64,000 nucleotides of DNA from NCBI GenBank assembly GCA_965113315.1, contig OZ220366.1; one strand, written 5' to 3'. Shown in pieces: positions 1,845-39,858 of this stretch. The notes under the pieces are model-generated. The model had not been told where the DNA came from. It saw only the letters and a list, made by a program, of their open reading frames with translations, and made no database searches. Every line of letters starts with the position of its first letter. Position 1 is the stretch's first letter. A program made the translations under genes and the position numbers. The stretch comes from Podarcis vaucheri. Lineage: Eukaryota.

Positions 1845-1873
1845 ACTACTACATACATACAAACATACATACA

Positions 1874-1907
<34 letters not shown>

Positions 1908-3317: not shown

Positions 3318-3532
3318 TGTTATATGGTCTTGGCTGAAGCATTCTTCTTCCTGTGTTCTTTGCTCTCCTCATGGAATCCTCCAACTTCTTACACTTTCCT
3401 CCTCATATTTCTGTGCTACACTCTTAGATCACTAGTCAATTTAAGCTGGGGAATACCAAGTATGGTTTCTCTCCCTTTCTACCTGTTTAGCTTATTGCAT
3501 TGAAATGACCATACAGGGAGCTAGTTCTGGAA

Positions 3533-3861
3533 TTATAGAATCATAGAGTTGGAAGGGACCCTGAGGTTCATCTAGTCCAATCCCCGGCAATGCTGGAATC
3601 TAAAGCATCCATGACAGATGGCCATTCAATCTCTGCTTAAAAACCTCCAAGGAAGGAGAGTTCACAATCTTCCAAGAAGTCTTCTTCACTGTCAACAACT
3701 CTTTCCATCAGAAAGTTATTCCAGATGTTGAGTTGGAATCTCCTTTCTTGCAACTTGGATCCATTGGTTCGGTTTCTACCCTCTGGAGCAGGAGAAACAA
3801 ACTTGCTCCATCTTCCATGTGACAGCCCTTGAGATATTTGAAGATGGCTATCATATCTCCT
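3533..3861 (-). mobile_element. CR1 LINE 3' fragment
   Basis: ATCATAGA tail motif; similar to 30647-31000; [16 protein letters not shown] remnant. Confidence 0.8.
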
Positions 3862-6633
3862 GGGATCCTGCAAGTTTAAGCCTTTTTAACCTGTGTGTGA
3901 ATATGTGTAGCTCCTGAAATATAGAAACATATCCATGTGCTGGAACATGCTGTGCTGGAACATGCTGTGGAATATGTTCCCTGTGGAATAATATGTGAAC
4001 CACTCGCCAAGAGCTATGCATTCTGCCGGCATCTGGCCCGCTGTTCTCTCTTTCTGGCCCACTGAAATCTCCACTGTGCAGAACCATCTAGATGGGATCA
4101 TATTGAGGAAGGACCTCACAGTTAAGCCAGATAGGTCTATCAGTTCTCTTCCATTGCAATATGCAAGCTGAAAAACAACAGTCCTTTGGAATTCACACTT
4201 CTCTGAATTTCGCAGTGCAATTCTTCAGATAAGTAATGCATACAAAAGTACATATACTAGTGTATAGTGTACATAATAAAGAGTGCTTATATTGATGAAA
4301 ATAATATTAAAAATGTATTTCATTGGGTGAAATGGTCTTGCAAAAATGTGTACATCAGGCAAAATTACATTAAAATGTGTATATTGGCAGCACTAATCAG
4401 TCACACTAAAATGCTGATTCAAAAGGACTTTTTAAAATAAATGCACAGTGATGTGGAAAGATAATCTGAATTTGAGAGATTTGGTCATCCCTAGCAATCT
4501 GCCACCTTCGTGAGGATGTGTGTGGAAGTGACTCTTCTGCATGCTCAGGGTGTCGTATTACCAAAGTTCACCTTGCCCTCATTAAGAGAGTGCAGGCCAG
4601 GAGATGAGATTTACAGGTTCCCAAGATGCACATGCAATAGAAGCAAAGAAAGTAAAAATATACTGATATGCATTTCTGGTTTCCTTCCTGCTGTAATATA
4701 GATATCAGTTCTCTGTGCATTAGTTTAGGCTGTTGTGGGGGGGGGATTAATGGTGTGATCACTTAAAGTATATTTCCCCCCCACTAGGGAGTGCACACCG
4801 TATATTTGTGAGTGATCCTTTGCTAAACTCTAATAGCAAATGCAAGTTGAGAATACCAGCAAATGGTTACTAAAACAGGGTAATAGGGAAATGTGAAGGA
4901 GTCATTAGCATGTTCAGAGATCACTAGAATTACAGATTGTTTTCTAAAAACCTGTTGGGGATTATTCATAACAGTAGGAGAATGTGCAATATTTAGTTGA
5001 TATATACACATTACCCAAGTCTTGTGGGAGATTAGGTATATTGACCTCTTCCTGAAAGGATTATGTGCATGTTTTCCACGAGGCCTGCTTAATGTGCACA
5101 GCTGTGAGTCGTGATGCACAGTAACCTCTCAACGTCCATTTTTCGTATGATAGATAGCCCAAACAGCCCCAGAATGTTCCCTATAGCCATGGTACATACA
5201 GTTCAGTTTCAGTCGGGAAATAAAAACAGAAAACTGGGGGGGGGGGCAGTGGTACGTCCTGGTTGGAGAGGATAGCTGGCTGGAACCCTGAACAACAGTG
5301 CTTCTGTTAGAAGGTGAGGATATGCTGTAGCATCTTGTTGTAGGTCCTATTGTCCTATCTTGGGGAGTGGGCTCTTAAGTTAAAATATTTCTGAAATTGT
5401 TTGACAGCCCTGCCCAATGGTATGAGAGGTCCATTCAAACGTTTGCATGTGGCGGCATTGCGGGACAGAGGATGCTTCAGTGGGGCCCCAATGGGGGAAT
5501 TCAAACTGTCTGGGCCCTTCCTGGTGGGCAGAGAGGGCATAAGCCTGCTCCCTGCTCCAGCAATAGGGGATGCAAGCTGGGACTTGGGCTGTGTGGAGGG
5601 CAAAGCCAATGGAGCCGATGGTGGGTTTTCCTCAGATTGCCCATTTAAACAGCCAGCCCCCTGCCCCCTGGTATGAGAATAGGGTAGTGAATGGATGATG
5701 CTTTGTGTCTGAAATCATCCCTGCAAAGCTGCATTAGCCACAGGGAGAGATGAGCAGGTACCATACTGGATAAAGGACTGGATCTGTAGCTGATGCAAAC
5801 CATTTCAATCTCACACTGACACGTCTTGATGGACACTCTCACACTCGAGAAAGAATGGTGGAATTGTGTCTCTTTGCATTTCACAGTGAATGGATTAGAT
5901 GATGCTCTGAGTCTGAATGATTGTCATAACTTGGAATGGACTGATTTCCCATAGTTCCACCACAGCTCCCCCTGCCTCCTTTGCCTCTCCACATCATGTG
6001 GTGTGGCCCAACAGCTTTAAGTCACCTGAAGCCATTTGTCGCACAGGCACCTTTCTGCAGTGCACCTCTCCTTTGAGTTAAAGGTTGATGGATGGATGTC
6101 CACTGTTGGATAGAGAGCTATTAAACACCAGCTGATTCTACGAGTGTGGCCATAAATAATCTCAAGCTCTAGACTGTATTCTTGTAAAATATAGCACTAG
6201 ATAACTAGCCTGCTTGGAAAATAGACTTGTGTCACTTTGCACGGCTGTGAGATAAGAGCTTAAAGGTGAAAAAAAGAGAAACACATCATTTTTTTTTGCA
6301 ATGCTTTAATATGCTGAATGCGCAAGTATGTTTCATAAAGATAATGCAAATGGGGAAATAAAATGCATTTCAACATTCTCAAGAGTAATAGCCAAGGTTG
6401 GCAAAAAAAATACTATGGATCTGAGACTAATTAGCTACATTTATAGCTTTGGGAGGAGATGATTTGCAGTTGTTGTTTGCAGACTGACCTCCCTGGCAAG
6501 GAAAGAAGCAGGAAATCGGGGTAGAGAGCAGGAAATGTGGAAAGCTACAGCTAAGCTAGCATTTTTCTTATTCTGTTTTTGTCTTGGAGGGATGCCGTTG
6601 TTGGAGGTTCCTGGTCTGTGACTTCATTTCGTT

Positions 6634-8814
6634 CTAATTTGCTGAAATGAAAAGAAGAGAAATCTGCTTTATAGGTTGAACATTCCTGTTTCAACTGCCT
6701 GGAAGCTGAATAGGGCTTGGGAGGAATTTCATTGGTTATGGATAAGTTGGGGGTTATCCTTGGTCTTGTCTGGATGGCTTCCTACTTGGGTTGTCAACTA
6801 AGGGATGTAGACACAAACAATGACATTGCATCCTTTTTTGTCACCTGGGGCGCATCTGCGTGTGCACCAGGGAGGACCAGGGGTTGGGCGTGGAGGGTGA
6901 ACATCATCATTCCACAGCATTGAGGGGAGGAGTGAGAAAGATACTGGTGTGTTTACATAGTAGTGGTTTCCACAAAGAATGGTTAAGAATATTCTAAGAA
7001 AATTATGCAAGACTGACTTTTTATAGTGGAGGGGATGAAAAAGGAAGAACCTCAGAAAAATATTTACTGTGAATTTTCTGCTTAGCTTTACATTATTCAC
7101 ACACACTGGTACCTCCTGGCATTTTCTTTTTCTACTGCAACATCACTGAATGGAAGGGAGTAAAAAAATTATGTTTCAAAGTGGGGGAGGGGCCACACAT
7201 GAGAATATTTTACTCAAATGTGCTACTCACCGTGGAAACACCATATCGTGTTCCTGATAGAATTGTTGAAACAGCACCCTCTTCTTAAACATTTAAATCT
7301 AGGTATTCCAGAGTATCCACATTCTCTTCTCCGGTTAGGCGGTACATTGCAGTTGCCTATTCAATAAGTAAAGTTGAGAGTTCTTTATTCATTGAAGAAT
7401 AGTTTGATTTAGCTTCAAGTCAACATTAGCCATGAAGATTTCCAAGCAAAAGAGAAATTGGATGCAGCCTGATCACCAAAGTCCTTCAAAATTCCAAATG
7501 TAAAACTATGTTCTGTTTGTAGGTACACATGGAAAATAAGTATGCTCAGTGGTAACCTTTAGATTCAAAGAGTGAAGTCAATGACACACAGAGAGAAACC
7601 TCAGCTCTGCCATTAGCTTTAGTCTATTGGTTGCCCAAGAGCCATAGGGGAGATACTCCCAAGGGTGATTTTTCAAGACAGCAGGAAGCTGGAGGTCCTC
7701 AGATCTTAAGAACTTGGAGCTGTGTGATGCCTGAACTGTTCTGAGCAGAGACAGAGAACCTCTCATATTCTTTCAGGCCTTCCTATTCACCTGAGACTTT
7801 CAATTTCTGAGGTCTTATGCATTGTTTCTGGCACAACGAAATCTCCAGAATGCAGAACAATCTACACTGGGTCATATAGGGAAAGAAGAGCCCACTTATA
7901 GGGATGTGATTGTATTCTATGACTGACAACTTCCAAAAGAGGAGCCAATGCTTAGTTTGTCACCAGAAAAGCAACAAATAGATCTGTGACATGTAAAGAC
8001 TAATACATTTACTGCAGCATCAGCTTTTCTGAATTACAAAAGCTGATGTTACAATAAATACCTTCAGGGGCAAAGTTCTCTTCTGATCACTTGGCTTATC
8101 AGCCATGACTCTTATAACCTTTTGTATGGGGGCAAATGAGTAGCTATACAGAGGTGGGGAACCCCCGGTCCATGGGCCAATGAGTCCCACCAGGTGTTCC
8201 CATTTGACCCATGAGGCTATGTGGGTGAAGCTACACCCACCTGCACTTCTCCTTATCATTATCACATCACCTGATGAGGAGGGGGGAGATAACAATCTGA
8301 CTTGCTGATCTAGAAGGGTCTGTAGCCCAAAGGAACTTGCAGAGTATGACCCATTGACATCAGCTAATTGTACTTTTAAGTAGACATGCATCGGATTGTG
8401 CTGGAAGACGGTAATGGAATGGATCCCCTAGGAATCATCCACCAACACAATTCAGGCCACCTCCCTTTTGGCCACCTGCCTTTGGAGGCTGTTGAAATCA
8501 GTGGTCAGTAACTAGGTTGTCCAGGGAGCCAAACACTGGTAACTTCCCACTGCTGCTACCCTGCTTTTTATGCACTGTAAAAAAATATGCCATCCAATCA
8601 TGTTTTTCCAAATTTATGGCATTGTTCTCCCTCCACATCTGTAGAATAGACTAGTATTAGCTATTAAATAGTTTTCAAAAAAAGTGAAAGTAATTTAAAT
8701 TGCTGGCTTACGTCTTTGTCCTTTGCCACCTTCGCCACCTCCCTGGCCATTTGCGAAACTGGCGAATCCTAAAACCAGGACAATGGCCAGGAGCCAGAGC
8801 AACTTGAAGTTCAT
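6634..8814 (-). CDS. Cationic single-domain trefoil peptide, copy 1 (78 aa precursor, 3 exons)
   Basis: Exons 8814-8712, 7356-7231 and 6641-6634, all GT-AG phase 1, 237 nt. Protein MNFKLLWLLAIVLVLGFASFANG|QGGGEGGKGQRRNCNVPPNRRRECGYSGIPRFKCLRRGCCFNNSIRNTIWCFHAN*. Signal peptide plus six-Cys trefoil motif. The 8-nt last coding exon is inferred from a strong acceptor shared by both copies and ATTAAA at 6305-6310. Confidence 0.88.
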
Positions 8815-8984
8815 TTTTTTCTGAAATGTTCTCCAAATCTTCAAACCTGTTGAAAGGTTCCGTATCAAAATTGTGATCTAGTAGAGGTTTAATCTACTTC
8901 CTTTTCAATGAAAAAATACATAACAAATGGAGGTTTTCAGACTGGGTTGGCAAATCATGAGTTCAGAATAGGTGACACTTAACA

Positions 8985-8990
8985 TTTATA
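8985..8990 (-). promoter_or_regulatory. Candidate TATA box of trefoil copy 1
   Basis: TATAAA ~170 nt upstream of the ATG, conserved in copy 2 at 24172-24177. Confidence 0.5.
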
Positions 8991-10343
8991 TTATAACACT
9001 TTCTAGCGTCCAAAGCGCTTCGCATGCATTCTGTAGCTGTTATCATGGCATCAATCCTCTAAAGCAAACTATTATCTCTGACATTGCAGGGAAAACAGGT
9101 GGAAGGAGAAGGAAACAGGTAGAAATCCAAGATAAATGTTTCTGAAAGGGAAGATCAACCGCAATATTAAAATTTATCAATAGGCACAAAAATTAAGTGG
9201 TTGTATCTTATCTGCACAGATAAGTGTGACATATTTAGGAAGCTCCTTGCTTGATTCAAGACAGTTGAGATCTGAGGAAACCTGGTTGTACCAGGCTCTT
9301 TCTGCAGACCAAAGTTCAACTTAAAACTGGCTCATGGAAATCAAAATATTTCAACAACATTCATGTGCATATGTGTACACACAGACACCACTTAGAGATG
9401 GATGAATGTGGACTTCCGGTTCGGCGCCAGCGCTAATGGCTGCTCTCTCTCCGAGCTCCGGAGAGAGGACGGCTCTGCGAGTTCGGGTCTGACCCGCTTC
9501 GGCAAGCGGGGGACCCCTAAAATCACAGGAACGGATCCTGTGAACAAGGAGATTCGGTGGGCACCCGAAGCGCCCCCTCTTTACCGCAGAAAGAGCCTTT
9601 TTAAAGGCTCCGGAACGACAACGGGGGAGCGCGGTGCTGAGAATCGCTACCCAGCCCGCAGAGTGAAGCCGCGTCGCCATTAGTGGAGAGCGCCGATTCC
9701 CTTCCTGAAAAATCTGGACAAAAAAGACCCGTGAGTAAGACTGAACCTCTATTCGAATTAAAACTACCTGAAATTAGGCTGAAAACGGGAAAGGCAAAAA
9801 TTAAGGAAGTCTGCCTTCCCCCGACTGCATGATAATTAAAGCAACGAAAGTTACTAAGCTGCATCCGTAAGGGAAAATCGTTTTTAAATGCTTGAATCCG
9901 ACATTTGGACTTTGACTATCCCCTCCAGCTTGCAGGGCAGAGGGGAGGAAAAAGTGACTTTACAAGCTGCATGACTAATTTAAAGGAAAAGGAAACCTTC
10001 TGCAGCCTCCAACCTGGTACGAACTGCTCATAAAACAAAAGGAACACTGAACTGACTTCAGATTCCTGTGAAAGCAACAAAGTGGAAGCTTTACTGTTTA
10101 TTTGTTACAAAGTTTTGGGACTTTGTGGATACATTATATCAGGGAAGGCTGGGACTCTATTTACTAGGAAAGTGTTGCATTATACTTATAGAAGCCTCCT
10201 GATAAATTTGCTTTTTAACACTCTTTATTTCGGTTTGCGGACATTCTGATTTGCTCCCTCTAGAGGGTAAACTAAAAGTTGCTACGCTTTGGGACAGTGG
10301 AATTTTCTTAGGAGAAGGCTCTTGTGGGAAACGACCTTGGGAT

Positions 10344-11384
10344 ATGAGTGGCCCAGCAGACGAGATAAGCACGAGAGCCAAGACAAGGCAATATCAACAA
10401 CAGCTGCAGCAACACAAGAAAAGAGGCTCGATCTCAGGAATAACTTCTACAGTGACAACAGGACAAGAAAGAGGCACAGCAGTCTCCATGGATGCAGTAT
10501 CGCAAGCCCTTCTTAAGATAAATCAATCCCTGGAGAATTTAACAAAGCAAACGGCAGAGAACACTAAGAAATTGACAGAGAACTCACAGAAATTGACAGA
10601 TTTGACAGCAAGACTTGATTTGAATACAGAATCTATAAATAAGCTTACGCAAGAGAACTCTGCCACACGTCAAATTGCGGAGGAAGCCAGAACTATTGCT
10701 GGAGAGACTCAGGAAAAATTAGAACCGATTGCCAGGAAGGTCTATGACCACGATGCAACTCTGGCACTGTGGGAACTACAAAGAAAAGAAAAGAATCTGA
10801 AATTACGATCAATTCCAGAGGACGAAGGAGACAACCTCACGGACTTTTTAACGAACGAGTTTGCTGATGCTTGGGAAGACTTAGAGGAAGACGAAATCAA
10901 AATCACAACGGCATTCAGACTGGGCAGAAGACAGAATAGAAAGGTACCGAGAGACTGCTTGATCACCTTGAGATCGAAGGAGGAAAGAGACAAAATATTA
11001 AGACTGCATTTTGAAAAGGCCTTACAAATTGGGAATTCACCGATACAGATCTTTAAAGATATCCCTAAACATATTCTGGACTTGAGAGCTTCTTATAAGG
11101 ACCTGGTTTACCTGCTCAAGAAGAACAACATTCGTTTTAGGTGGGAATTTCCACAGGGACTGTCCTTTGACTATAGAGGGAAGAAGGTGAAAATAAAGAC
11201 GACACAGGATAAAGACAGCTTCCTGCATAAAAATCAAGAAGATCTACAGAAAGGAACTGTAGACCCAATTGCTGAGCAAAGGAGTGTATTAGATATCTTG
11301 AACCTCTCATTTGGACAGAACCTTCCACCACCAACAGAGGAGGAACAACAATTGGGAGCAGTGGGAGGAATACCAGAAAAATAA
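10344..11384 (+). CDS. L1 ORF1p (coiled coil plus RRM/CTD nucleic-acid chaperone)
   Basis: First in-frame ATG at 10344 within the 10251-11384 ORF; heptad-rich segment followed by KNLKLRSIPE, IFKDIP and FRWEFP motifs resembling L1 ORF1. Confidence 0.88.
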   Translation: MSGPADEISTRAKTRQYQQQLQQHKKRGSISGITSTVTTGQERGTAVSMDAVSQALLKINQSLENLTKQTAENTKKLTENSQKLTDLTARLDLNTESINKLTQENSATRQIAEEARTIAGETQEKLEPIARKVYDHDATLALWELQRKEKNLKLRSIPEDEGDNLTDFLTNEFADAWEDLEEDEIKITTAFRLGRRQNRKVPRDCLITLRSKEERDKILRLHFEKALQIGNSPIQIFKDIPKHILDLRASYKDLVYLLKKNNIRFRWEFPQGLSFDYRGKKVKIKTTQDKDSFLHKNQEDLQKGTVDPIAEQRSVLDILNLSFGQNLPPPTEEEQQLGAVGGIPEK

Positions 11385-11388
11385 CAAG

Positions 11389-14300
11389 ATGGCCCTGCAA
11401 TTCCTTAGCTGGAATTGTAATGGGATGAACATGCCTTTGAAGAGACGACAAGTATTCCACATTTTGTACAGAGAACAACTGGACGTGATTTGTTTACAGG
11501 AAACTCACATAACCAGAGCCCACAGGAGACTGCTTATGAATAAAAAATTGGGACAAGAATTTATCTCGTCAGACAAAGTGAAAAAAAGAGGAGTTGTGAT
11601 TTATGTAAAAGAGAAGTGGGCCCCAAAAATGATTTTTAAAGATGAAGAAGGAAGATATTTAGCGGTGGAGATTCAAGCACAAGGAGAAAAATTTTTGATA
11701 ATTGGGATTTATGCACCAAATGAAGGTAAAGCAGAATTCTTCAAAAAACTTCATGAAACCCTGATGGACTATTTGGAATATAATATGATAATTATGGGAG
11801 ATATGAATGGTGTAGTTTCTACAAACATGGACAAGACACAAAGGCTGATACTCACTAAAGAAGGGAGACTCCCGAAGACTTTTTTTGAAATGACTGAAAA
11901 TATGGACTTAATAGACATTTGGAGAACAAGGAACCCTCTTGAAAGAGAGGGAACCTTTTTCTCCCAAGCAAAGATGACCTGGACCAGAATCGACCAAATC
12001 TGGATTACTAGTGGAATGGCTCCGAGGATTAAGAAGGTAGAAATCTGCCCAAAAACCTGCTCCGACCATAACGCCGTGAAGATGGAAATGAAACTTACAA
12101 CAACTGGGCAGTTTAGATGGAGAATGAATGACACCCTGTTTCGAGATAGAGAGTTCCACTTGAAGGCCCAAAAAACTTTAAAGGACTATTTTGAAATCAA
12201 TCTAAGGGGCGATGTGGAAAGAAGAGTGATCTGGGACGCAAGTAAAGCTGTGATGCGAGGGTTTTTGATTCAACAAAACTCAATAAAGAAGAGAAAGCAG
12301 AAGGAGAAAAGAGAAAAAATTTTGGAAAAGATAAAAGAAGGAGAGAAAAAATTAAGGTCAAAACCAAAGTCCCAGGAGATTTTGAGGGAGATTAAATTGT
12401 ATCAAACACAATATATGGAATTGATGAACCAAGAGATAGAGTGGAAAATAAAGCAAATGAGACAAAAGACATTTGAGTCGGCAGATAAATGTGGCAAACT
12501 TTTGGCATGGCAACTCAAAAAAAGACAGAAATTAAATACAGTTTCAAGTTTGGAAGTGGATGGAAGGACCATATCTAAACCAAATGAGATAAGAAACTGT
12601 TTTGTGAGTTATTTCAAAAAACTTTATTCCCAAGGATTACAAAATGAAGAAGACATAGATAAATTCCTTAATAAACATGGATTACAAAAAATCTCTCCTC
12701 AAAGTAGGGTGGATCTAAACCAGAGAATAACAGAACAAGAGATAGAGGGTGCCATTCAGGACATGCAATTGGGCAAATCTCCAGGGCCAGATGGACTGAC
12801 TTCCAGATATTACAAATCGTTAAAGGAATGGTTGATACAACCGCTAAAGGATGTCTGTAATGAGATCTTAGAGGGGAAAAAGGCACCTGAATCGTGGAAA
12901 GAAGCATATATTTCACTCATACCAAAGACAGAGACTGAAAAGACTCAATTGAAGAACTACCGCCCAATCTCGTTACTCAATGTGGATTACAAAATTTTTG
13001 CAGACATTTTAGCAAAAAGATTCAAAAGAGTATTGATGGAAAGGATTCATAGAGACCAAGCAGGCTTTCTCCCAAAGAGACACCTCTCAGACAATGTTAG
13101 GAATATAATAGACATTCTGGAAAAGTTAGAGGTGAATATAAATACTAGAGCAGTTTTGATATTTGTGGATGCGGAGAAAGCCTTTGACAACATTTCTTGG
13201 AGTTTTATGAAAAAGAACCTTCATGGGATGGGGGTAGGACAAGGTTTTGAGAATGGTATAGGTGCAATATATTCCGAACAAAAAGCTAAGTTGATTGTAA
13301 ACAATGTAATAACTGAGGAACTTAAGATAGAAAAAGGAACACGACAGGGGTGCCCAATTTCCCCATTGCTTTTTATTTCGGTCCTGGAGGTGTTGCTGAA
13401 TATGATTAGAGAGGACCAGCAAGTTAAAGGTGTACAGGTCGGAGCAAAACATTACAAGTTAAGGGCTTTCGCAGATGACTTAGTTCTGACTTTACAAGAG
13501 CCATACACTAGCACGAAAAAGGTGTTGGAGATAATTCAACAATTTGGCCAGGTAGCTGGATTTAAACTGAATAAACAAAAAACTAAAGTCTTAGGGAAAA
13601 ACCTGACAGATATGGAGAAGAATAAGTTTCAAGAAGAGACGGGTTTGATGGTGGTTAAGAAGGTGAAATACCTAGGGGTTAATTTAACATCTAAAAATTT
13701 GAATTTATATAAGGACAATTATGAAAAATGTTGGTTAGAAATTAAAAAAGACTTAGAAATATGGTCAAATTTGAGATTATCAATGTTAGGCCGAATTGCA
13801 GTAATTAAGATGAATGTATTGCCTAGAATGTTATTTTTGTTTCAAACTTTGCAGATTATTGACAAGATGGACTGTTTCAAGAGGTGGCAGAAAGATATTG
13901 CGAAATTTGTCTGGCAGGGCAAAAAGCCCAGAATAAAATATAAAATACTAACAGATGCAAGAGAAAGAGGGGGATTTGCCCTGCCGGACTTAAAATTGTA
14001 CTATGAGGCAGCAGCATTCTGCTGGCTGAAAGAGTGGATGCTCCTCGAGAATACAGATATCTTGGACTTAGAAGGTTTCAATAACGCATTCGGTTGGCAT
14101 GCATATTTATGGTATGACAAAATCAAAGTGCATAGTGCCTTTAAAAATCACATTGTAAGGAAAGCGTTGTTCAATGTTTGGATGAGATATAAAGACCTGT
14201 TGGAAAACAAAACCCCTAGATGGTTGTCACCCTTAGAGGCGAAGGCCCATAAGAAAGTTAATATGGAGGTCGGATGGCCAAAGTATTGTGAGATTTTAGA

Positions 14301-15126
14301 ACAGGATGGAGAGAAACTGAAATTAAAGAGCCATGAAAAACTAAAACCCAAAGTACAAGATTGGCTCCACTATTATCAAATAATGGAGGTTTTTAAACAA
14401 GACAGGAAAATTGGCTTCCAGGTGGAAAAATCAAAACTTGAGACAGAACTGCTAGAACCCAATATTAAGAATTTGTCAAGAATGTATAACTTGCTGTTGA
14501 AATGGAACACACAAGATGAAATAGTTAAATCAGCTATGATTAAGTGGGCACAGGACATTGGTCATAATATTATGTCTGCTGACTGGGAAAGGTTGTGGAA
14601 CACCGGAATTAAATTTACGGCATGTAGTGCCTTAAAGGAAAATGTGATGAAAATGGTATACAGGTGGTACATGACCCCAGTTAAGCTAGCAAAAATTTAC
14701 CATTTGCCTGACAATAAATGCTGGAAATGTAAGGAAACTGAAGGTACTTTTTATCATCTTTGGTGGACATGCCCGAAGATTAAGGTCTTCTGGGAGATGA
14801 TATATAATGAAATGAAAAAGGTATTTAAATATACCTTTCTTAAGAAACCAGAGGCCTTTCTCTTGGGCATTGTCGGCCAATTGGTGCAAAAAAAGGATAG
14901 AACATTCTTTATGTACGCAACAACAGCAGCAAGAATATTGATCGCAAAGTATTGGAAGACACAAGATCTACCCACCGTGGAAGAATGGCAGATGAAAGTG
15001 ATTGACTATATGACATTGGCGGAAATGACGAGCAGAATTCGAGACCAGGGAAAGGAGACTGCGGAAGAAGATTGGAAGAAATTCAAGATTTATCTTAAGG
15101 ACTATTATAAACTTGATGAAGCTTAG
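11389..15126 (+). CDS. L1 ORF2p (APE endonuclease, reverse transcriptase, CCHC), 1245 aa
   Basis: SWNCNG, LQETH, GDMN and SDH (APE); PGPDG, YRPISL, DAEKAFD, RQGCPISP and FADD (RT); CWKC..HLWWTC. ATG 4 nt after the ORF1 stop. Confidence 0.95.
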   Translation: MALQFLSWNCNGMNMPLKRRQVFHILYREQLDVICLQETHITRAHRRLLMNKKLGQEFISSDKVKKRGVVIYVKEKWAPKMIFKDEEGRYLAVEIQAQGEKFLIIGIYAPNEGKAEFFKKLHETLMDYLEYNMIIMGDMNGVVSTNMDKTQRLILTKEGRLPKTFFEMTENMDLIDIWRTRNPLEREGTFFSQAKMTWTRIDQIWITSGMAPRIKKVEICPKTCSDHNAVKMEMKLTTTGQFRWRMNDTLFRDREFHLKAQKTLKDYFEINLRGDVERRVIWDASKAVMRGFLIQQNSIKKRKQKEKREKILEKIKEGEKKLRSKPKSQEILREIKLYQTQYMELMNQEIEWKIKQMRQKTFESADKCGKLLAWQLKKRQKLNTVSSLEVDGRTISKPNEIRNCFVSYFKKLYSQGLQNEEDIDKFLNKHGLQKISPQSRVDLNQRITEQEIEGAIQDMQLGKSPGPDGLTSRYYKSLKEWLIQPLKDVCNEILEGKKAPESWKEAYISLIPKTETEKTQLKNYRPISLLNVDYKIFADILAKRFKRVLMERIHRDQAGFLPKRHLSDNVRNIIDILEKLEVNINTRAVLIFVDAEKAFDNISWSFMKKNLHGMGVGQGFENGIGAIYSEQKAKLIVNNVITEELKIEKGTRQGCPISPLLFISVLEVLLNMIREDQQVKGVQVGAKHYKLRAFADDLVLTLQEPYTSTKKVLEIIQQFGQVAGFKLNKQKTKVLGKNLTDMEKNKFQEETGLMVVKKVKYLGVNLTSKNLNLYKDNYEKCWLEIKKDLEIWSNLRLSMLGRIAVIKMNVLPRMLFLFQTLQIIDKMDCFKRWQKDIAKFVWQGKKPRIKYKILTDARERGGFALPDLKLYYEAAAFCWLKEWMLLENTDILDLEGFNNAFGWHAYLWYDKIKVHSAFKNHIVRKALFNVWMRYKDLLENKTPRWLSPLEAKAHKKVNMEVGWPKYCEILEQDGEKLKLKSHEKLKPKVQDWLHYYQIMEVFKQDRKIGFQVEKSKLETELLEPNIKNLSRMYNLLLKWNTQDEIVKSAMIKWAQDIGHNIMSADWERLWNTGIKFTACSALKENVMKMVYRWYMTPVKLAKIYHLPDNKCWKCKETEGTFYHLWWTCPKIKVFWEMIYNEMKKVFKYTFLKKPEAFLLGIVGQLVQKKDRTFFMYATTAARILIAKYWKTQDLPTVEEWQMKVIDYMTLAEMTSRIRDQGKETAEEDWKKFKIYLKDYYKLDEA

Positions 15127-16334
15127 AATGTTGAGATTCTATAGAGAGAAAGGGCTGCAGTAATATAAGATTAGAATAAGAAAGGACTATGATGAATTAG
15201 AGTTGGAAAAAACATTTATAAGTTGCTATAAAATTTGGACATGAGGATGCAGAAAGGGGAGGTATGGGGAAGTCCGAGGAAAGAAGTTTATGAAATGACA
15301 TTATGAAATTATACTTGTTTGTTTGTCTGTTTTCTTTTTTGTGTTTGTCTGTTATAAAAACTTTTGTAAAACTAATAAAAAATATTATAAAAAAAAAGAG
15401 ATGGATGAATGTGTCAACTTCAGTGTCTCTCAATTTCTCATGTTTACAATCTCAGATTCAGTTTGCTGTATTTTGGCATCAGCTATGAATTTTCTTATAA
15501 ATTTGCATGAAGATTCATCAGAATTTCTCCTAACATCCCCCCTTTTTTTGTATGCAACTTTGCCTCACATACACATTTTTGCAGGCAATATTCCCTAAGA
15601 ATGCATTTTGGTCTGCTATTTTCACCTTTATCTGCCTTTCTAAGCCCCTTATGTGCACTTTCCGTACATCTTCTTTTGGTTGGAGAGGGTAGCATAAAAT
15701 TCGCAGAAGTCTGAATTTAGAACAAAAGCCTCATTTAAGTTTGTGTATTGCGAAGTGGGTAGAGTTGCATTAAAATGAAAATCAAACCAAATCCCTTGCC
15801 TCCCAGTCGCTAGAACCACTTGACTTACCCCACCTGAATGAGTTGCTGAACAGCTAGATGAGAAACAGCAGGATATCAAAACTCAGAAGGGCAAGGCTAA
15901 CTTATATGGTTCAAGAAGACCTCCTCCTTCCTGTTGCAGCCCCTTGAGGTGAAAATGCTATCAATAATTGGGCCAATAAAATACCCGTTAGTAAACCCAA
16001 AAGCCAAGAACTGGACGTCAGGTTCAGGAAACAATGCAAGTCAACGGACTTTTGTAGCAACATTTCAGTTGATTTCTTATATCTTTTATGTCAAAAAATC
16101 CAACCGTTTTGTGGTCACAAGAAGCTGCTGTTTCCATGTGTTGCATTTTCCTATCTTGAGCAACAGGTAAATGAGACTTAGGACATTTTAATTGACAACC
16201 TCTTTTATCTGGCAATCTTGCTTCTTTTTTTTTTAGCCTGCAACTTTCTCATGCAAGGAGGAACACAACTTTAGCAGATTTACTGGTCTCATATATGCTA
16301 ATTTTTGAAGGCAATAATTTCACAAATTCAATAT

Positions 16335-18965
16335 TTTTTAATTTTTTATTTTGCTTTTAAATTACTTTATTGAACTTAAAACAAATAACACAAAATCAAA
16401 ATTATCCATAACAAATAAACCTCAAAGAGTTGTCGATATTATTACAGTTCATCACAGTCTTCTTCCAGTTTCATTGACTTCCCACCAACTCCATCCTGCT
16501 TTAAATGTATATTTATCTAGTGCTCTGTTTGTGTCTATTTTAGATAATTGCTTAGCCAAAATATTGTACTTTCTTAAACCTGTTCGGTGTATAACAGAAG
16601 CTATTCAAAGGCTGCCACAGATTTTATATTGTTCCAATCTTTTATGTAACTTTTAAATAAACCCCATTTATTGAAAAATGCTTAATCTGCATGGTCTCTT
16701 ATTCTTCCTGTTAGCTTAGCTAGTTCTGTGTACTCCATTAATTTTTGTTGCCACTCCAATTTTGATGGTACTTTTTCTCCTTTCCAATTTGATGCTATTA
16801 AAATTCTCACGGCCAGTGTCGCATATAAGAATCATTCCCTTACACTTTTTGGAATATCGGAACCCAGTATCCCAAGAAGGAAGGCCTCTTGTGTTTTTTT
16901 TGTAAACACAATCTTAAGCATTTTTTTAAAGTTCCATATATATTTCATCCCCAAATTCCTTAATTTTTCTGCAACTTCACCACATGTGCAGCATCAATCC
17001 CACTGCTTCTTTGCATCTCCAACATTTGTTTGATACATTCTTATACATTTTGAATAGTTTTAAGGGAGTAATGTACCAACGGTACTGCATTTTCAGAAAG
17101 TTTTCTCTCAATGTGTAACAAGCAGTAAATTTCATATTTGTCCTCCAGAGGTTTTCCCAATCCTTCATTAAGATATTATAGCCAAAGTCCTGTGCCCATT
17201 TTATCATGATGGATTTTACCTCTTTTCCAGGTTTACCTGACTTCCCAGTGAAGGAGGAGTCAGTACATTTTGGAAAGCATTTTAGTTTTTGAATTAATCA
17301 GATCACTCTCTAATCTAGATGGTTCTGTTGCAAATCCTTTTCTTATGTCTATTTTAAATGTCTCATTCAACTGATGGTGTAGGAGCCAATCTGACAAGTG
17401 TTTTCTTATTTCCTCGAAATTTTTAAGTTTCAATTGATTATCTTAACTAATATTTTGTATGCCATCCAGTTTTCTTTCATATTTTTCTTTTTTAAGAAAA
17501 GTGCTTCTAGGAGGAAATCCACCACAGTGCTTTGGGTTCCAAGAGCTCTTTATATTTTGCCCAGACCATGTAAAGGGGCCTTCTTATGATGTGGGTTAGG
17601 AAGTTTGTATGGACCTTTACTTTGTCGTACCCTAGGTACACATGCCAACCATACTGGTTGTCATAGCCTTCCAGATCTAGTAGGTTTGAGTCCTGTAAAG
17701 TACACCACTCCTTAATCCAGGTTAGGCAGGCAGCCTCGTAATATAATGTTAGATCCGGCAACGAGACCTTCCCTCTTTCTTTTATGTCAATTAAAAACTG
17801 GTGTTTGATTCAGGGTCTTTTCCCTTGCCAGATGAACCTGGAAATATCTCTTTACCATTTTTTGAGGCTGTCTTTCCCTCCCATCACAGGTATTGTTTGG
17901 AATAAAAAGAGCATTTTCAGTAACACATTCATTTTTATGGTTGAAATCCTTCCCAAAAAATGTAAGTTTAAACTACTCCATATATCCAAATTCCTCTTAA
18001 TTTCACTCCAAATTTTGACGTAATTGTCTTGAAAAAGATTAATATTTTTTTTGGGGGGTGATCCATATACCAAGGTATTTTACTTTTTGGCAGATCTTCA
18101 GGTTTGAGGGGTTTTTTTCCAGATCTTTTCTGTCTTGTATTGTGAGGTTTTTAATTAGAAGCTTTGTTTTGGAACTGTTAAGTCTAAATTCCACTACTTG
18201 TCCGAAGTTATTGATTATTTCTAGTGTCCTTAATTGTCAGGGAACTGCTATCGGCTCAGAGGTGAGAAATAGAAGGGCAGTTGTGTTACGGGGAGCCTCC
18301 GAAAATCTTGCGAAGCAGTTCCTCTTCCGGGGAGGAGGAAAGCCCCACCTCCAGTGGGGAAGAGGTGCAAGGACCAGAGGATGCTGGTGGGAGCCTTAAC
18401 ACCGCTCCTGAGCAAGTCGGACAGGAGGGAAACACACCCTTGCCATTGCCCATCCTGTGCGGTAGTCTAAGGCGCAAAGAGGGAAGGAGAAGGTTGGGGG
18501 TAACAAAACTCTTATGTTGGGGAAGTCCAAAGAAAGACCACTCCCGGATCCTCCTAGTGATTGAGCCAGACATGAGCTTTGGGGCTCTTCACTGTAAATA
18601 GTTTGCACCAAAATAAAGCCTGTAAAACACAGGTTAGAGTCTAAAGCCTGTAAAACACAGGTTGGAGTCCTGCCTGGTTACTCTCGAGCAACCGCAACAG
18701 CCATCTGACATTAATAGACTTTCTTCAGGGTTTTCAGTCATTATAATAAGGGCATCTGCGAAGGCTTTCAGTTTGTACGCTTTCTCACCTAATGTAATTC
18801 CTTTTATCTCTTGGTCTTCTCTTATTTGACTGTTCAGCACTTCCGTGACGAAATGAATATCAATGGGGATAGTGGACACCCTTGTCTTAATCCTTTTCTT
18901 ATTATAAAATCCTCTGTGATGTTACTGTTGATAATTATTCTTGCTTGTTGATCTGAGTAGATCAT
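16335..18965 (-). mobile_element. Decayed 5'-truncated L1 (ORF2 remnant), interrupted by a solo LTR
   Basis: Frameshifted fragments resembling the intact ORF2 (KLKAFAD, MPDLTLYYEAA, MIKWAQD, CWRCKE); T-rich tail near 16335. Ends approximate. Confidence 0.88.
18235..18710 (+). mobile_element. Solo LTR (Gypsy-like) nested in the decayed L1
   Basis: TGTCAG...CTGACA termini, 5-bp TSD TTAAT at 18230-18234 and 18711-18715, internal AATAAA near 18612. Confidence 0.85.
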
Positions 18966-20735
18966 CTTAGTTTGCCTACCCATGCTCTAGGGCCTGCCAG
19001 AGCCATCATGACTCCTTCTCAAAGCCCAGGTCTTACTATGTTTTTGGGAAGGAGGCAGGAAGTCTCCCCCTCAGCTAGCCGCCTAGTGTGAGGGAACCAG
19101 TTGCACCACTCCAAATCTGCCTTTGGTGTAGTATTCTTTAACATGTAACACAACTCTTTTGTTGTATATTTTTGTGATAATATCCAGAGCTACAAATGGC
19201 TATTCCTCATCTTAATTCCCCCCCCCCATTGTAATAGGAAATGCAAGGTGAGAATCCCAGCAAATGGTTACTAAAACAGGGACCACTGGGAAACAATGAA
19301 GGAGTCATTAGCATGTTCAGAGATCACTAGAATTACAAAGATTGTTTTTTTAAAGCCTGTTGCGGATTATTCATAACAGTAGGAGAATGGGGAAAATTAA
19401 GTTGATATATGCACATTACCTTGTGGGAGATTAGGTATATTGACCTCTTCCTGAAAGGATTATGTGCATGTTTTCCATGAGGCCTGCTTAATGTGCACAG
19501 CAGTCAGTTGTTATGCACAGTAACCACTCAATGTACATTTCTTTTAAGACAGATAGCCCTAACAGCCCCAGAATGTTCTCTATAGCCATAGTGCAGACAG
19601 TTCAGTGTCAGTCAACAGTTCGGTGTCAGTCAGGAAAGAAAAACAGAAAACTGAAGGGGGTGGGGGGTGGCAGTGGTACGTCCTGGTTTGAGAGGATAGC
19701 TGGCTAGAACCCTGAACAACAGTGCTTCTGTTAGAAGGTGAGGATATCCTGCAACTTTTTGTTGTAGATCCTATGGTCCTATCTTGGGGAATGGGCTCTT
19801 AAGTTAAATCATCCCCACAAAGCTGCATTAGCCACAGGGAGAGATGAGCAGGTGCCATACTGGATAAAGGACTGGATCTGTAGCTGATGCAAACCATTTC
19901 AATCTCACACTGACAAAGGGGTGACACCCTCACACGCGAAAAAGCATGATGGAATTGTGTCCCATATGATGATCTCTTTGGATTTCACAGTGAATGGATT
20001 GGATGATGCTATGAGTCTGAATGATTGTCATAACTTGAAATGGACCGATTTCCCATAGGTCCACCACCACTCCCCCTGCCCCCTTTGCCTCTCCACATCA
20101 TGTGGTGTGGCCCAACAGATTTAAGTCACCTGAAGCCATTTGTCCCACAGGCACCTTTCTGCAGTGCACCTCTCCTTTGAGTTAAAGGTTGATAGATGGA
20201 TGTCGACTGTTGGATAGAGAGCTATTAAACACCATGTGTGTGGCCATAAATAATCTCAAGCGCTAGACTGTATTCTTGTTGTAAAAAAAATAGCTAGATA
20301 TCTAGCCTGTTTGGAAAATAGACTTGTATCACTTTGAATGGCTGTGAGATAAGAGCTTAAAGGTGAAAATATGTCAAGAGCATTAAAAAGAGAAACACAT
20401 CATTTTAACAATGCTTTAATATGCACAAAATGGTTTCATAAAGATAATGCAAACGGGGAAATAAAATGCATTTCTACATTCTCAAGAGTAATAACCAAAG
20501 TAGGCAAAATGGAGCTGAGACTAATTAACTACGTTTATACATTTTGGGGGAGAGGATTTGCAGTTGTTGTGCGCAGACAGATATGAACTGACCTCCCTGG
20601 CAAGGAAAGAAGCAGGAAATTGGGGTAGAGAGGAGGAAATGTTGAAAGCTACAGCTATGCCAGTATTTTGTTTTCTGTTTTTGTCTTGGAGGGATGCCGT
20701 TGTTGGAGGTTCCTGGTCTGTGACTTCATTTCGTT

Positions 20736-22958
20736 CTAATTTGCTGAAATGAAAAGAAGAGAAATCTGCTTTATAGGTTGAACATTCCTGTTTCAACTGC
20801 CTGGAAGCTGAATAGGGCTTGGGAGGAATTTCATTGGTTATGGATAAGTTGGGGGTTATCCTTGGTCTTGTCTGGATGGCTTCCTACTTGGGTTGTCAAC
20901 TAAGGGATGTAGACACAAACAATGACATTGCATCCTTTTTGTCACCTGGGGAGCATCTGCGTGTGCACCAGGGAGGACCAGGGGTTGGGCGTGGAGGGTG
21001 AACATCATCATTAAAGGGAAGTCTTATTTCTGCACATAGCTGTTGGTTCTCTTTCTGCACAAAACTGCTCCATTATGGGGAAGCCTTGCTCCTCTTTTCT
21101 CTTGCTTTAGAAATCTTGCTTGTAGGCTTTTCCCTGCTTTTGCACACACTGTACGAACCTGCTCTTCATGCCTAGCTGACCACATCTACAGAACTTGATT
21201 GTTACATTGTTTCATGTTATGATCAATCATTAGTAACAGACATCCTAAGCTCATGGAAAACAAACTGAACCTGCTCTTCATGCCTAGCTGACCACATCTA
21301 CAGAACTTGATTGTTACATTGTTTCATGTTATGATCAATCATTAGTAATTGTTTGTGCCATATTAATCTCTAGTTACAATTTAATTAGGAGGCTTCATGC
21401 CTGTCTAGTTCCAGCTTCGATTCCCAGCCTTTACTCCATCAATGATAAATGATCACATGTAATCCCCACCTCTCACATGTAATTCCCGCCTTAGTACTTA
21501 TGTTAACCAATCACAAGTTTCTTTGTGTATGTATCAACCAATCAGCCACAGGCCCACCTGTGGCAATGCTTGTAATATTCAATAAAAGAGGCTCTCAGGG
21601 TCCGCCCAGACAGACGCCTCATGTTACACCTGCCTCTCTCGTCTCCCGTGATTTTTCATTCCTACACATCATTCCACAGCATTGAGGGGAGGAGTGAGAA
21701 GGATACTGGTGTGTTTACATAGTAGTGGTTTCCACAAAAAATGGAGGAGAATATTCTAAGAAAACTATGCAAGATGGCCTTTTTATAGTGGATGGGATGA
21801 GAAAGGGAAAACCTCAGAAAAGTATCTACTGTGAAATTTCTGTTTAGCTTTACATTATTCACACACACTGGTCTCCTCCTGGCATCCCCCCCCCCTCTGG
21901 TTGCAACTGAATGGGAGGGGGTAAAAGTTTGATGTTTCATAGTGGGGGAGGGGCCACACATGATAATATTTTACTCAAATGTGCTACTCACGGTAGAAAC
22001 ACCATTTTGAATTCTTGATAGCATTGCTGAAACAGCAGTTTCTTTTTAAACATGTACTTCTAGGTATTCCAGGGTATCCACAGTCTCTTCTCCGACTAGG
22101 AGGTACGTTACAGTTGCCTATTCAATAAGAAAAGTTGAGAAATCAAAATTCATAGAGGAATAGTTTAATTTATATTCAGGTCAACAATAGCCATGAAGAT
22201 TTCCAAGCAAAAGAGAAATAGGATACAGCCTGATCACCAAAGTCCTTCAAAATTCCAAATGTAACTCAGTATTCTGTTTTACTGAAAGCTGTTTGTAGGT
22301 ACACATGGAAAATAAGTATATGCTCAATGGTAACCTTTACCTTCAAAGAGTGAAGTCAATGACACACACAGTGAAACCTCAGCTGTGCCATTAGCTTTAC
22401 TGGTTGCCCAAGAGCTATGGGAGAGGAACTCCCAAGGGTGATTTTTCAAGACTGCAGGAAGCTGGATGTCTTCAGATCTTAAGAACTTGAAGTTGTGTGG
22501 TGCCTCTGAGTAGAGACAGAGAACCTCCCTGAACCAAATGAGCCTCTTTATATATGTTCTGGAAGCTTTCTCTGGCCTTATCTCTAGTTTTTTGGTCACT
22601 GTTGTTATGTTAGGAAGTTGTCACATATCTAAAAGGTCTCACTGAGCTAAGCAAATAAATGGGCAGAAAATACAAAGGCTTATTTCTCTCTTTGAAAGTT
22701 GTGACCCATCAAGATGAATGGAGTGCACCAGGCATTGTATTGTGGCCTGCTAGGTGTTCATCATCTGCAAGTATATAGCACAAGCAGGAAGTTTACCACA
22801 TCTCTGATGGCTCACCATATGTGGTTGGTATTTGGCTTGGTGACCAACAAGATGCTCAGGCATGGCCTTAACTTTTTCCCACAGCACACCATTACATTTT
22901 GCTTCCTGAAGCAGACCTCAGGTGCTCCACCATGAACCTGGCTAGGGTCAGCAAGTTG

Positions 22959-23001
<43 letters not shown>

Positions 23002-24001
23002 GTCTTGTTGAACATTCATATATCAGTTCATGCCTTCATCTATTTCCTACATGAAGCCAGTCACTCCATCTTTCTGTATAGCAAAGCCAACCCTGACTGT
23101 TTGAAAGTCCCCCTCTGGTCATTTGGCTTATCAGCCATGACTCTTGTAACCTTTTGTACAGGGGCAAATGAGTAGCCATACAGAGGTGGGGAACCCCTGG
23201 TCCATGGGCCAATGAGTCCCACCAGGTGTTCCCATTTGAGCCTTGAGCCCATGTGGGTGAAGCTACACCCACCTGCACTCCTCCTGATGTCATCAGCTGA
23301 TTGTCAGATCTTCAGAAGCCCCGTTCAATGGGTTGAGAAAAATTGGGCAAAAAAAGGTCATCTGAATTCTTAATGGTGTCAGATGATATCATTATCACCT
23401 GATGAGGAGGGGGGAGATAACAATCTGACTTGCTGATCTAGAAGGGTTTGTAGCCCAAAGGAACTTGCAGAATTTGACCCATTAATATCAACAGATTTTA
23501 CTTTTAAGTAGACATGTATTGGATTGTGCTGAAAGACGGTAATGGAATGGATCCCCTAGGAATCATCCACCAGCACAATTCAGGCCACCTGCCTTTTGGC
23601 CACCTGCCTTTGGAAGCAGTTGAAATCAGTGGTCAGTAACTAGGTTGTCCAGGGAGCCAAACACTGGTCCCTTCCCACTGCTGCTACCCTGCTTTTTGTG
23701 CACTGTAAAAAAATATGCCATCCAATTGTGTTTTTCCAAATTTATGGCATGGTTCCCCCTCCACCCCTTCTAGGAACAGGGTCACAGCTGTAGAATAAAC
23801 TAGTATCAGCTATTAAATAGTTTTATAAAAAATGAAAGTAATTTAAATTGGTGACTTACGTTTTTGTCCTTTGCCCCCACGGCCTCCTCGGCCACCTCTA
23901 CCACCACGGCCACCTCCACCACGGCCACCCCTGGCATCTGCGAAACTGGCGAATCCTAAGACCAGGACAATGGCCAGGAGCCAGAACCACTTGAAGTTCA
24001 T
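20736..24001 (-). CDS. Cationic RGG-repeat single-domain trefoil peptide, copy 2 (91 aa precursor, 3 exons)
   Basis: Exons 24001-23860, 22117-21992 and 20743-20736, GT-AG phase 1, 276 nt. Protein MNFKWFWLLAIVLVLGFASFADA|RGGRGGGGRGGRGGRGGRGGKGQKRNCNVPPSRRRDCGYPGIPRSTCLKRNCCFSNAIKNSKWCFYPN*. ATTAAA at 20415-20420. Confidence 0.88.
21012..21666 (+). mobile_element. Probable ERV solo LTR in intron 2 of trefoil copy 2
   Basis: Absent from the paralogous site (~6911); CATCAT TSD at 21006-21011 and 21667-21672; ends CCTACA; two CCAAT boxes, AATAAA near 21581 and an internal ~80-bp direct repeat. The 5' end reads TA rather than TG. Confidence 0.7.
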
Positions 24002-24585
24002 TTTTATCTGAAATGTTCACCAAATCTTCAAACCTGTTGAAAGATTCCAGATGAAAGTTGTGACCCAGTAGAGTTTTAATATACTTCCTTTTCAATGAAG
24101 AAAGGTATAACAAATGGAGGCTTTCAGGCTGCGATGGTAAATCATGAGTTCAGAATAGGTGACACTTAACATTTATATTATAACACTTTCTAGCGTCCAA
24201 AGCACTTCGCATGCATTCTGTAGCTGTTATCATGGCATCAATCCTCTAAAACAAACTATTATCTCTGACATTGCAGGGAAAACAGGTAGAAGGAGAAGGA
24301 AACAGGTAGAAATCCAAGATAAATGTTTCTGAAAAGGAAGATCAACTGTGATATTAAAATTTATCAACAGGCACAAAAATGTAAGTACCTGAATCTTATC
24401 TGCACAGATATCAAAGCAAGTGTGACATATTTAGAAAGCTCCCTGCTTGATTCAAGACAGTTGAGATCTGAATAACCTGGCTCTAGGAGGCTCTTTCTGC
24501 AGACCAAAGTTCACTGCAAAACTGGCTCACGGAAATCAAAATATTGCAACAACATTCATGTGCATATGTATACACACACACACCA

Positions 24586-35559: not shown

Positions 35560-35692
35560 NNNNNNNNNNNNNNNNNNNNNNNNNNNNNNNNNNNNNNNNN
35601 NNNNNNNNNNNNNNNNNNNNNNNNNNNNNNNNNNNNNNNNNNNNNNNNNNNNNNNNNNNNNNNNNNNNNNNNNNNNNNNNNNNNNNNNNNNN
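35560..35692. other. Assembly gap (133 N)
   Basis: Run of N between TFF2 and the four-domain gene. Confidence 1.

Positions 35693-39807: not shown

Positions 39808-39858
<51 letters not shown>

Follow-up and report, generated by a model that had tools for sequence, protein, structure and literature searches.

We found that a 64,000-nucleotide stretch of DNA from the lizard Podarcis vaucheri (NCBI GenBank assembly GCA_965113315.1, contig OZ220366.1; hereafter the window, to which all positions refer) contains two tandem, transcribed genes for small, highly cationic trefoil factor (TFF) peptides. Each of these genes, here called copy 1 and copy 2, encodes a putative signal peptide, a Gly-rich tail and a single six-Cys trefoil domain, and neither product has the seventh Cys of TFF1 and TFF3. 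Gene order and a domain tree place the two copies in a squamate-specific branch of the TFF family. It is quite possible, if short of probable, that the peptides act in host defence on mucous surfaces.

Two intact genes encode cationic, single-domain trefoil peptides

Both genes were read from the sequence as three exons on the minus strand and checked by script. The coding sequence of copy 2 runs from 24001 to 20736. Its exon 1 (23860..24057, comprising 5' untranslated region [UTR] and coding sequence 24001..23860) is supported by the sequence and by spliced contigs from RNA runs X1 and X3, and codes for a putative signal of 23 amino acids (aa), MNFKWFW..ADA, followed by RGGRGGGGRGGRGGRGGRGGKGQK and the opening base of an Arg codon, before the donor GTAAGT. 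The RGG tract in this exon (23873..23929) was detected by TRF as a 9-bp tandem repeat of 4-6.7 copies. Exon 2 (21992..22117), between the acceptor ...TTGAATAG and the donor GTGAGT, holds the whole trefoil domain, NCNVPPSRRRDCGYPGIPRSTCLKRNCCFSNAIKNSKWCFY (Pfam PF00088), and both of its junctions are present in RNA contigs. Exon 3 (20415..20743), covered by an X1 contig over 20743-20495, starts at 20743 after the acceptor TTTCATTTCAG; two nucleotides (nt) finish a Pro codon and are followed by Asn, the stop codon TAG (20738-20736), the 3' UTR and ATTAAA at 20420-20415, a putative poly(A) signal. A TATA-like box, TATATTAAAA, at 24074..24083 on the minus strand is a candidate promoter element and lies ~20-30 nt upstream of the furthest RNA contig 5' end, at 24057. 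The precursor is 91 aa long. The mature peptide of 68 aa contains 12 Arg, 5 Lys, 1 Asp, no Glu, 17 Gly and 6 Cys, has a net charge of +16 (counted exon by exon, with split codons translated separately) and ends in WCFY-PN.

The coding sequence of copy 1 runs from 8814 to 6634. The coding part of exon 1 (8712..8814), identified from the sequence and from near-identity to the P. muralis protein P0085, specifies the putative signal MNFKLLW..ANG, the stretch QGGGEGGKGQR and the opening base of an Arg codon. Exon 2 (7231..7356) encodes the trefoil domain NCNVPPNRRRECGYSGIPRFKCLRRGCCFNNSIRNTIWCFH (Pfam PF00088), which holds one NNS sequon. Exon 3 (6305..6641), read from the sequence and touched by the loose end of an X6 contig at 6541-6570, finishes an Ala codon and continues with Asn, the stop codon TAG (6636-6634), the 3' UTR and ATTAAA at 6310-6305. 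The 78-aa precursor would give a mature peptide of 55 aa with 9 Arg, 2 Lys, 2 Glu and 6 Cys, a net charge of +9 and the C-terminal end WCFH-AN.

The two genes share their splicing signals and their layout. Donors are GTAAGT or GTAAGC for the first intron and GTGAGT for the second, acceptors are a pyrimidine-rich AG, and both introns are in phase 1. Each precursor begins with a hydrophobic stretch, a predicted helix, and an A-x-A or A-x-G site; the proposed cut after 23 aa (..ADA/R in copy 2 and ..ANG/Q in copy 1; the slash marks the cut) fits the -3/-1 rule as judged by eye. Given their size, net positive charge and six Cys, the mature peptides are small, net-cationic and disulphide-locked in the manner of the defensin-like class. 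The preliminary description of this DNA had proposed two intact three-exon genes encoding such peptides, with mature charges of about +16 and about +9 and ends two residues after WCFx. Reading of the sequence and the Pfam matches bore out the gene structure, our recount reproduced the charge and composition figures exactly, and exon 3 gave the ends PN and AN with no seventh Cys.

Both copies are transcribed

Four candidate RNA runs (with about 1/10 of words present; sample labels coded) were aligned to 20400-24060. Run X1 yielded a 553-nt contig that aligns to copy 2 in three blocks, 24034-23859, 22116-21992 and 20743-20495, and run X3, from the same sample, yielded a 308-nt contig over the first copy 2 junction; the second joint was also seen there. 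Read on the plus strand, the joints have CT..AC ends, equivalent to GT..AG in the direction of the gene, and they fall at the predicted junctions and last exon. The 5' ends of RNA contigs at copy 2 were at 24034 (X1) and 24057 (X5). Outside an interspersed repeat at 21012-21664, the depth over the copy 2 introns was zero, which rules out genomic DNA as the source of the spliced contigs. Compared to the window, the copy 2 contig has five base differences and an additional Gly codon within the RGG tract; in this transcript, from "organism A", the contigs of X1 and X3 have 3 nt, CCA, inserted behind 23915.

Copy 1-type mRNA is expressed in a second organism. Run X6, from a different organism, gave 3' UTR contigs of high depth, one loose end of which matches only 6541-6570. 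This segment of the UTR is specific to copy 1, indicating that copy 1-type mRNA is expressed in the X6 organism. At the site paralogous to the TATA-like box of copy 2, copy 1 reads TAGATTAAAC (8870-8880, minus strand), and copy 1-type mRNA is abundant in X6 despite this sequence. Based on these results, we conclude that both copies are real, transcribed genes. The junctions and last exon predicted in the preliminary description agree with the copy 2 transcript contig.

The trefoil domain is basic and retains the sugar-contact positions

Both copies matched Pfam PF00088 (E 1.7e-14 for copy 2 and 5.8e-14 for copy 1; cutoff 21 bits), and in phmmer searches the trefoil sequence matched Protein Data Bank structures of pig TFF2, TFF1 and TFF3. 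The comparisons of fold and of full-length copy 1 used the P. muralis orthologue P0085, and the exons of the two copies were searched separately. In the AlphaFold2 model of P0085, the trefoil part has a pLDDT confidence of 86-88, and residues 24-31, in the tail, are below 50. Foldseek aligned this model with human TFF1 (6v1d) and with a TFF3-ligand complex (6v1c) at a root-mean-square deviation of 1.1-1.4 A, a probability of 1.00 and a template-modelling (TM) score, relative to the target, of 0.73-0.75. Peptides of this class are thereby predicted to have the three-loop trefoil fold.

The trefoil core is unusually basic. From Cys I to Cys VI, the net charge is +7 in both copies, compared to -2 to +1 in four of the other trefoil domains in the window, and +7 was reached by only ~4% of the 328 domains in the best 150 database hits. 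Basic trefoil domains are also found in sturgeon, bichir, frog and tunicate proteins, so basicity of the trefoil alone is not unique to these peptides.

The positions that contact sugar are retained. In the TFF3 complex, just two side chains reach the sugar, those of Asp20 (preceding Cys II) and Trp47 (preceding Cys VI) (PMC7221086). Asp20 of TFF3 is Asn in TFF1 and TFF2; the contact residues of TFF1 are Asn14 and Trp41, and the ligand is GlcNAc-alpha-1,4-Gal (PMC7221086). Mutation of either contact residue abolishes mucin binding, and cross-linking needs divalency (PMC7221086). Copy 2 keeps Asp and Trp at these two positions; copy 1 has a conservative change to Glu at the first and keeps the Trp. 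The lectin site therefore looks preserved, and the apparent changes are that Cys VII was lost and charge was gained. The preliminary description had proposed that the trefoil fold was repurposed as a cationic peptide. We found no support for this part of the proposal, because retention of Asp or Glu together with Trp favours a lectin with an added tail over a repurposed fold.

In TFF1 and TFF3, a seventh Cys in an acidic C-terminal tail serves for homo- and heterodimers (PMC7350206). No such Cys with an acidic tail is present in either copy, and the copy 2 transcript uses the predicted last exon. Given the missing Cys, disulphide-linked homodimers or heterodimers of the TFF1/TFF3 type would not be expected.

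Relatives are present in other squamates

Relatives were gathered by an exhaustive HMMER search with exon 2 and two word-indexed searches. Copy 1 differs by 2 aa over 78 aa from a Podarcis muralis RefSeq protein named "trefoil factor 1-like" (P0085), which has the same ..WCFHAN end. The searches recovered no RGG-expanded protein of the copy 2 type from the protein collections they covered. The core NCNVPP.RR.(D/E)CGYPGI..TCL.R.CCF...WCF is also found in Salvator merianae, Varanus komodoensis and snakes of the genera Laticauda, Naja, Ophiophagus, Pseudonaja, Notechis, Ahaetulla and Crotalus. In P0085, Notechis P0171, Ahaetulla P0190, the third and fourth domains of Varanus P0002 and Salvator P0093, the core has a charge of +6 to +8 and follows TFF2, as in the window.

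In snakes and Varanus the cationic tail has another composition. The RefSeq models of Notechis and Ahaetulla have the signal MNCKWLW..TDA followed by the Pro/Arg-rich tails RIPFRPRPPPRRPPRKGG (mature net charge +16 in Notechis) and RIPIRPRPPPRKPPRKGG, respectively, and Varanus has the signal MNFKWFW..ADA followed by the Pro/Arg-rich tail RIIPRPPRTRPRPGRS. RGG chemistry was seen solely in the present lacertid sequence. The RGG and Pro/Arg tails are not related by a frameshift on the same strand: the other frames of the RGG tract read VVA.. and WWP.., and PPR is read only on the antisense strand. A polycationic tail joined to a basic trefoil core thus characterises the class in lacertids, in snakes and in Varanus.

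The class is already in the databases under generic automatic names (for example, "trefoil factor 3-like" for the snake proteins P0171 of Notechis and P0190 of Ahaetulla), and the RGG-expanded copy 2 type alone is missing from the collections. A literature search for squamate or cationic TFFs found no relevant description, with most subscription journals outside its coverage. The earlier statement that no such TFF class was known is correct in that no paper describing it was found, and incorrect in that relatives are listed in databases.

Several public squamate models fuse neighbouring TFF genes: P0002 (Varanus), P0190 (Ahaetulla), P0031, P0044, P0046, P0052 and P0151. In the Varanus model P0002, named "xP4", the intron after the second cationic domain is read through. 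These fused annotations look wrong, and they appear to mask single-domain cationic genes.

The copies are additional paralogues between TFF2 and TFF3

Gene order in other squamates separates the cationic domains from TFF3. In Varanus P0002 the order is TFF2 (two domains), a cationic domain, a second cationic domain (domains 3-4 of the model), and a TFF3-like domain ending in ..QGQECLF. In models from Ahaetulla, Pseudonaja, Naja and P. muralis (Ensembl), a cationic domain is followed by a domain of the form QC.VQP.AR.NCGYPYISAQ.C. The TFF3-like domain downstream in squamate models has an acidic or Cys-bearing tail. A trefoil-domain phylogeny, already suggested in the preliminary description, agreed with the gene order: cationic domains and squamate TFF3-like domains were split with a support of 88/95, and copy 1, its P. 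muralis orthologue and copy 2 formed one clade with a support of 99/92. This tree has 45 domains and few columns and should be read with caution. The separate downstream TFF3-like domain in five squamate models, together with the tree, rules out that the copies are orthologues of TFF3. Gene order and tree place them instead as extra paralogues between TFF2 and TFF3, in a squamate-specific TFF branch.

The copies do lie on the TFF3 side of TFF2, as had been described earlier, yet a separate TFF3-like gene is expected outside the window. No TFF3-like domain was found left of copy 1 (positions 1-6600), so the true TFF3 orthologue should lie beyond the start of the window. The lacertid signal is 70% identical to that of a snake TFF3-like model, and this likeness suggests that the cationic branch descended from a duplicate of TFF3.

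The duplication that produced the two copies appears to have occurred within the lacertid lineage. Comparison of the halves by blastn identified a duplicated unit on the minus strand at 19232..24585, with copy 2, and at 4831..9390, with copy 1; the two units are joined by collinear blocks that are 86-92% identical, in line with the tandem duplication proposed previously. The identity of the flanks and the 99/92 clade together indicate a duplication in lacertids. Copy 1 and domain 4 of Varanus both have Glu before Cys II and WCFH; an old duplication, with one-to-one correspondence between the lacertid pair and the Varanus domains, is ruled out by the same clade and flanks.

Exon 2 has changed faster than its surroundings. 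Between copy 1 and copy 2 it is 82% identical in nucleotides, and 13 of the 41 residues differ. By the NG86 method, dN was 0.18, dS 0.33 and dN/dS 0.54 over the 41 codons. The dN exceeds the non-coding divergence, yet the copies share every Cys, the GY.GI motif and the Trp. Over so few codons, this pattern is suggestive only of a fast-evolving but constrained effector.

The TFF cluster and other features of the window

A six-frame scan for the canonical trefoil (P-type) pattern of six Cys, C-x9-10-C-x9-C-x4-CC-x10-C, found six instances, all on the minus strand: at 48401-48514, at 38651-38764, at 30217-30336 and 29043-29156 (the two domains of TFF2), at 21999-22112 (copy 2) and at 7238-7351 (copy 1). 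The window is a squamate TFF gene cluster, with a TFF1-like gene, a four-domain gene, TFF2 and copies 1 and 2 on one strand. The four-domain gene (36966-40855, minus strand) has trefoil-like domains at ~40855-40703, 40112-39996, 38764-38645 and 37094-36966. Domain 1 lacks the usual context of Cys II and domain 2 lacks the Trp. A run of N is present at 35560-35692.

Several repeats and mobile elements interrupt the locus. Intron 2 of copy 2 contains the interspersed repeat of ~650 bp at 21012-21664, absent from copy 1. Many contigs, from all four RNA runs, are 90-95% identical to it, so members of this repeat family are either widely transcribed or carried within transcripts. An (AAT)n microsatellite (22949-23012) sits in intron 1 of copy 2. 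Between the copies is an apparently intact L1-like long interspersed nuclear element (LINE) on the plus strand (10251-15126), with ORF1 at 10251-11384 (377 aa) and ORF2 at 11311-15126 (1271 aa, endonuclease/reverse transcriptase-like), followed by older, inverted LINE fragments at ~16.7-19 kb. Where the duplicated units end (24585 and 9390), at matching positions upstream of the two promoters, a different element begins in each case. Upstream of copy 2 this is an open reading frame of 467 aa on the plus strand with reverse transcriptase and GIY-YIG domains (Penelope-like; 24560-25963), and upstream of copy 1 it is a GC-rich element (9390-9680).

Discussion

We tentatively propose that the peptides reside in mucus and serve host defence, with the trefoil on mucin glycans and the cationic tail and surface on polyanions or microbes; on the sequence and the comparisons made here, we hold this to be possible rather than probable. 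Such a peptide would consist of two modules. One, specified by exon 1, would be an N-terminal tail of low complexity, disordered and polycationic; lacertid copy 2 has the RGG type, copy 1 a short Gly-rich form, and snakes and Varanus a Pro/Arg-rich one. The other would be a compact trefoil with three disulphides, basic (+7) and still with the glycan-contacting Asp or Glu and Trp. Secreted into mucus as a monomer without Cys VII, the protease-resistant trefoil may dock on mucin O-glycans, and the tail and basic surface may bind bacterial envelopes, lipopolysaccharide or lipoteichoic acid, sulphated or sialylated glycans, or nucleic acids, so that microbes would be killed directly or trapped. 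We lean towards a host-defence role because the cationic tail is conserved across squamates despite its changed chemistry, and because the two-module layout parallels that of crustins. A bolder version, which we consider rather unlikely, is that these are chimeric host-defence peptides of squamates, in which a trefoil that anchors to mucin carries an effector tail that was swapped between Pro/Arg (snakes and monitors) and RGG (lacertids). They would then be an independent counterpart of the two-module antimicrobial peptides of the crustin/penaeidin type and the first TFFs with a direct antimicrobial mechanism.

The copies resemble several known systems in part. Like mammalian TFF1 and TFF3 and Xenopus xP1, they have one six-Cys trefoil, with a fold match of 1.1-1.4 A, and lie in a TFF cluster. 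The genes also have the same three exons (signal in the first, domain in the second, the third very short), and the glycan-contact positions of TFF1 and TFF3, Asp/Asn (Glu in copy 1) and Trp, are kept. Unlike the acidic TFF1 and TFF3, the lizard copies have a net charge of +9 to +16 and a long, low-complexity cationic N-terminal extension; they have neither the seventh Cys nor the acidic C-terminal tail and would not be expected to form heterodimers with FCGBP or GKN2. The squamate relatives (P0085, P0171, P0190, domains 3-4 of P0002, and P0093) share the signal type (MNFKW.. or MNCKW..), the core and the position in the locus, and differ in that the tail of copy 2 is RGG-expanded, compared to Pro/Arg-rich in snakes and Varanus and none in the tegu model. 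Xenopus xP2/APEG, with two trefoil domains versus one in each lizard copy, reportedly has an N-terminal repetitive region (Hauser et al. are said to have described it in 1992), and this repeat is said to be of the acidic APEG type and not polycationic. It is a TFF-domain protein made in the granular glands of the skin, which are defensive (PMC7177656).

Proven antimicrobial peptides of crustaceans offer a close parallel in architecture. Type II crustins combine a Gly-rich repeat with a Cys-rich region and a whey acidic protein (WAP) domain; type III crustins have a short Pro/Arg-rich N-terminus and a single WAP domain, and the Pro/Arg region goes with antibacterial activity (PMC9680087). Peptides of the penaeidin/hyastatin type have a Pro-rich and a Cys-rich domain (PMC4954822). 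Crustins, penaeidin and hyastatin share with the lizard copies a signal, a low-complexity Gly-rich or Pro/Arg-rich N-terminal region that varies strongly between species, a small disulphide-locked domain, cationic charge and multiple gene copies. The likeness is an analogy of architecture only: there is no homology, the crustacean proteins have WAP or other Cys-rich folds rather than a trefoil, and the Gly-rich regions of crustins are hydrophobic (GGLG, GVPG), unlike the lizard RGG.

Several findings weigh against host defence. The RGG tails are neither amphipathic nor hydrophobic, and no function has been assigned to many of the Gly-rich tails of type II crustins. The tail of copy 1 is only +2, Glu replaces Asp/Asn in its trefoil, and loop 3 has a possible N-glycan site. 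The Ensembl model from the tegu Salvator (P0093), which may be incomplete, has no tail. A dN/dS of 0.54 on 41 codons does not demonstrate positive selection. The monomeric state may also fail across the class, since snake models disagree at the C-terminus (one Ensembl model ends in ..PSFSCRR, with a seventh Cys) and several models join the cationic domain to a TFF3-like domain. Lastly, the retained lectin residues fit a purely structural role in mucus equally well.

This structural role, the main rival although we consider it doubtful, is that of a non-killing mucus lectin whose trefoil cleft binds GlcNAc-alpha-1,4-Gal on mucin, with its positively charged tail and surface attaching to mucin chains that are sulphated or sialylated. 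The peptide would thereby gain a second valency as a monomer, with electrostatics in place of Cys VII dimers, and would tune mucus viscosity. The glycan-contact Asp or Glu and Trp, and the position of the genes in the TFF cluster beside TFF2 and TFF3, are consistent with such a lectin, but the Pro/Arg-rich tails of snakes and Varanus are closer to antibacterial Pro/Arg regions than to known mucin-binding motifs, and the paralogues have diverged faster than expected of a housekeeping component of mucus. Divergence of exon 2 that outpaces the introns would also be expected of a secretion of reproductive or exocrine glands (oral, cloacal, hemipenial, oviductal or femoral) under sexual or ecological selection rather than in immunity, as would the tandem duplication, the turnover of low-complexity tails and the difference in RGG length between window and transcript. 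Conservation of the same core from lacertids to snakes, in a cluster whose members are mucosal, makes this distinctly improbable.

Two further possibilities concern the tail itself. The tail might be only part of a precursor that is cut at a dibasic site (..KGQKR/N in copy 2 and ..KGQRR/N in copy 1) to free a Gly/Arg peptide and a tail-less basic trefoil. The pairs KR and RR do fall exactly at the junction of exons 1 and 2 in both lacertid copies, but the site is not conserved (..PRKGG/N in Notechis and ..RPGRS/C in Varanus) and Gly at P4 leaves no furin consensus, and we regard such processing as very improbable. The tail might also be a by-product of repeat slippage, with charge accumulating in recent duplicates that drift without a specific function. 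A slippage-prone 9-bp repeat underlies the RGG tract, and a dN/dS of 0.54 is compatible with relaxed constraint. Against drift, open frames, all six Cys, consensus splice sites and poly(A) signals persist in both copies, both are transcribed, and a basic core with a cationic tail recurs in distant squamates; we find drift scarcely credible.

To our knowledge, TFF peptides have been studied almost only in mammals and Xenopus. The TFFs of these animals are acidic or near-neutral lectins that gain valency from a second domain or from a disulphide through Cys VII. The squamate branch appears to break this pattern: Cys VII has been dropped, the core is basic, and a polycationic tail has been added whose chemistry varies between lineages. 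The fused squamate TFF models in databases need correction. We believe that this branch may serve as a natural experiment in how a second binding function can be coupled to a trefoil domain. Should the peptides kill or trap microbes, the antimicrobial repertoire of vertebrates would gain a new protease-resistant, mucus-targeting scaffold, and the TFF family would be linked directly to innate immunity.

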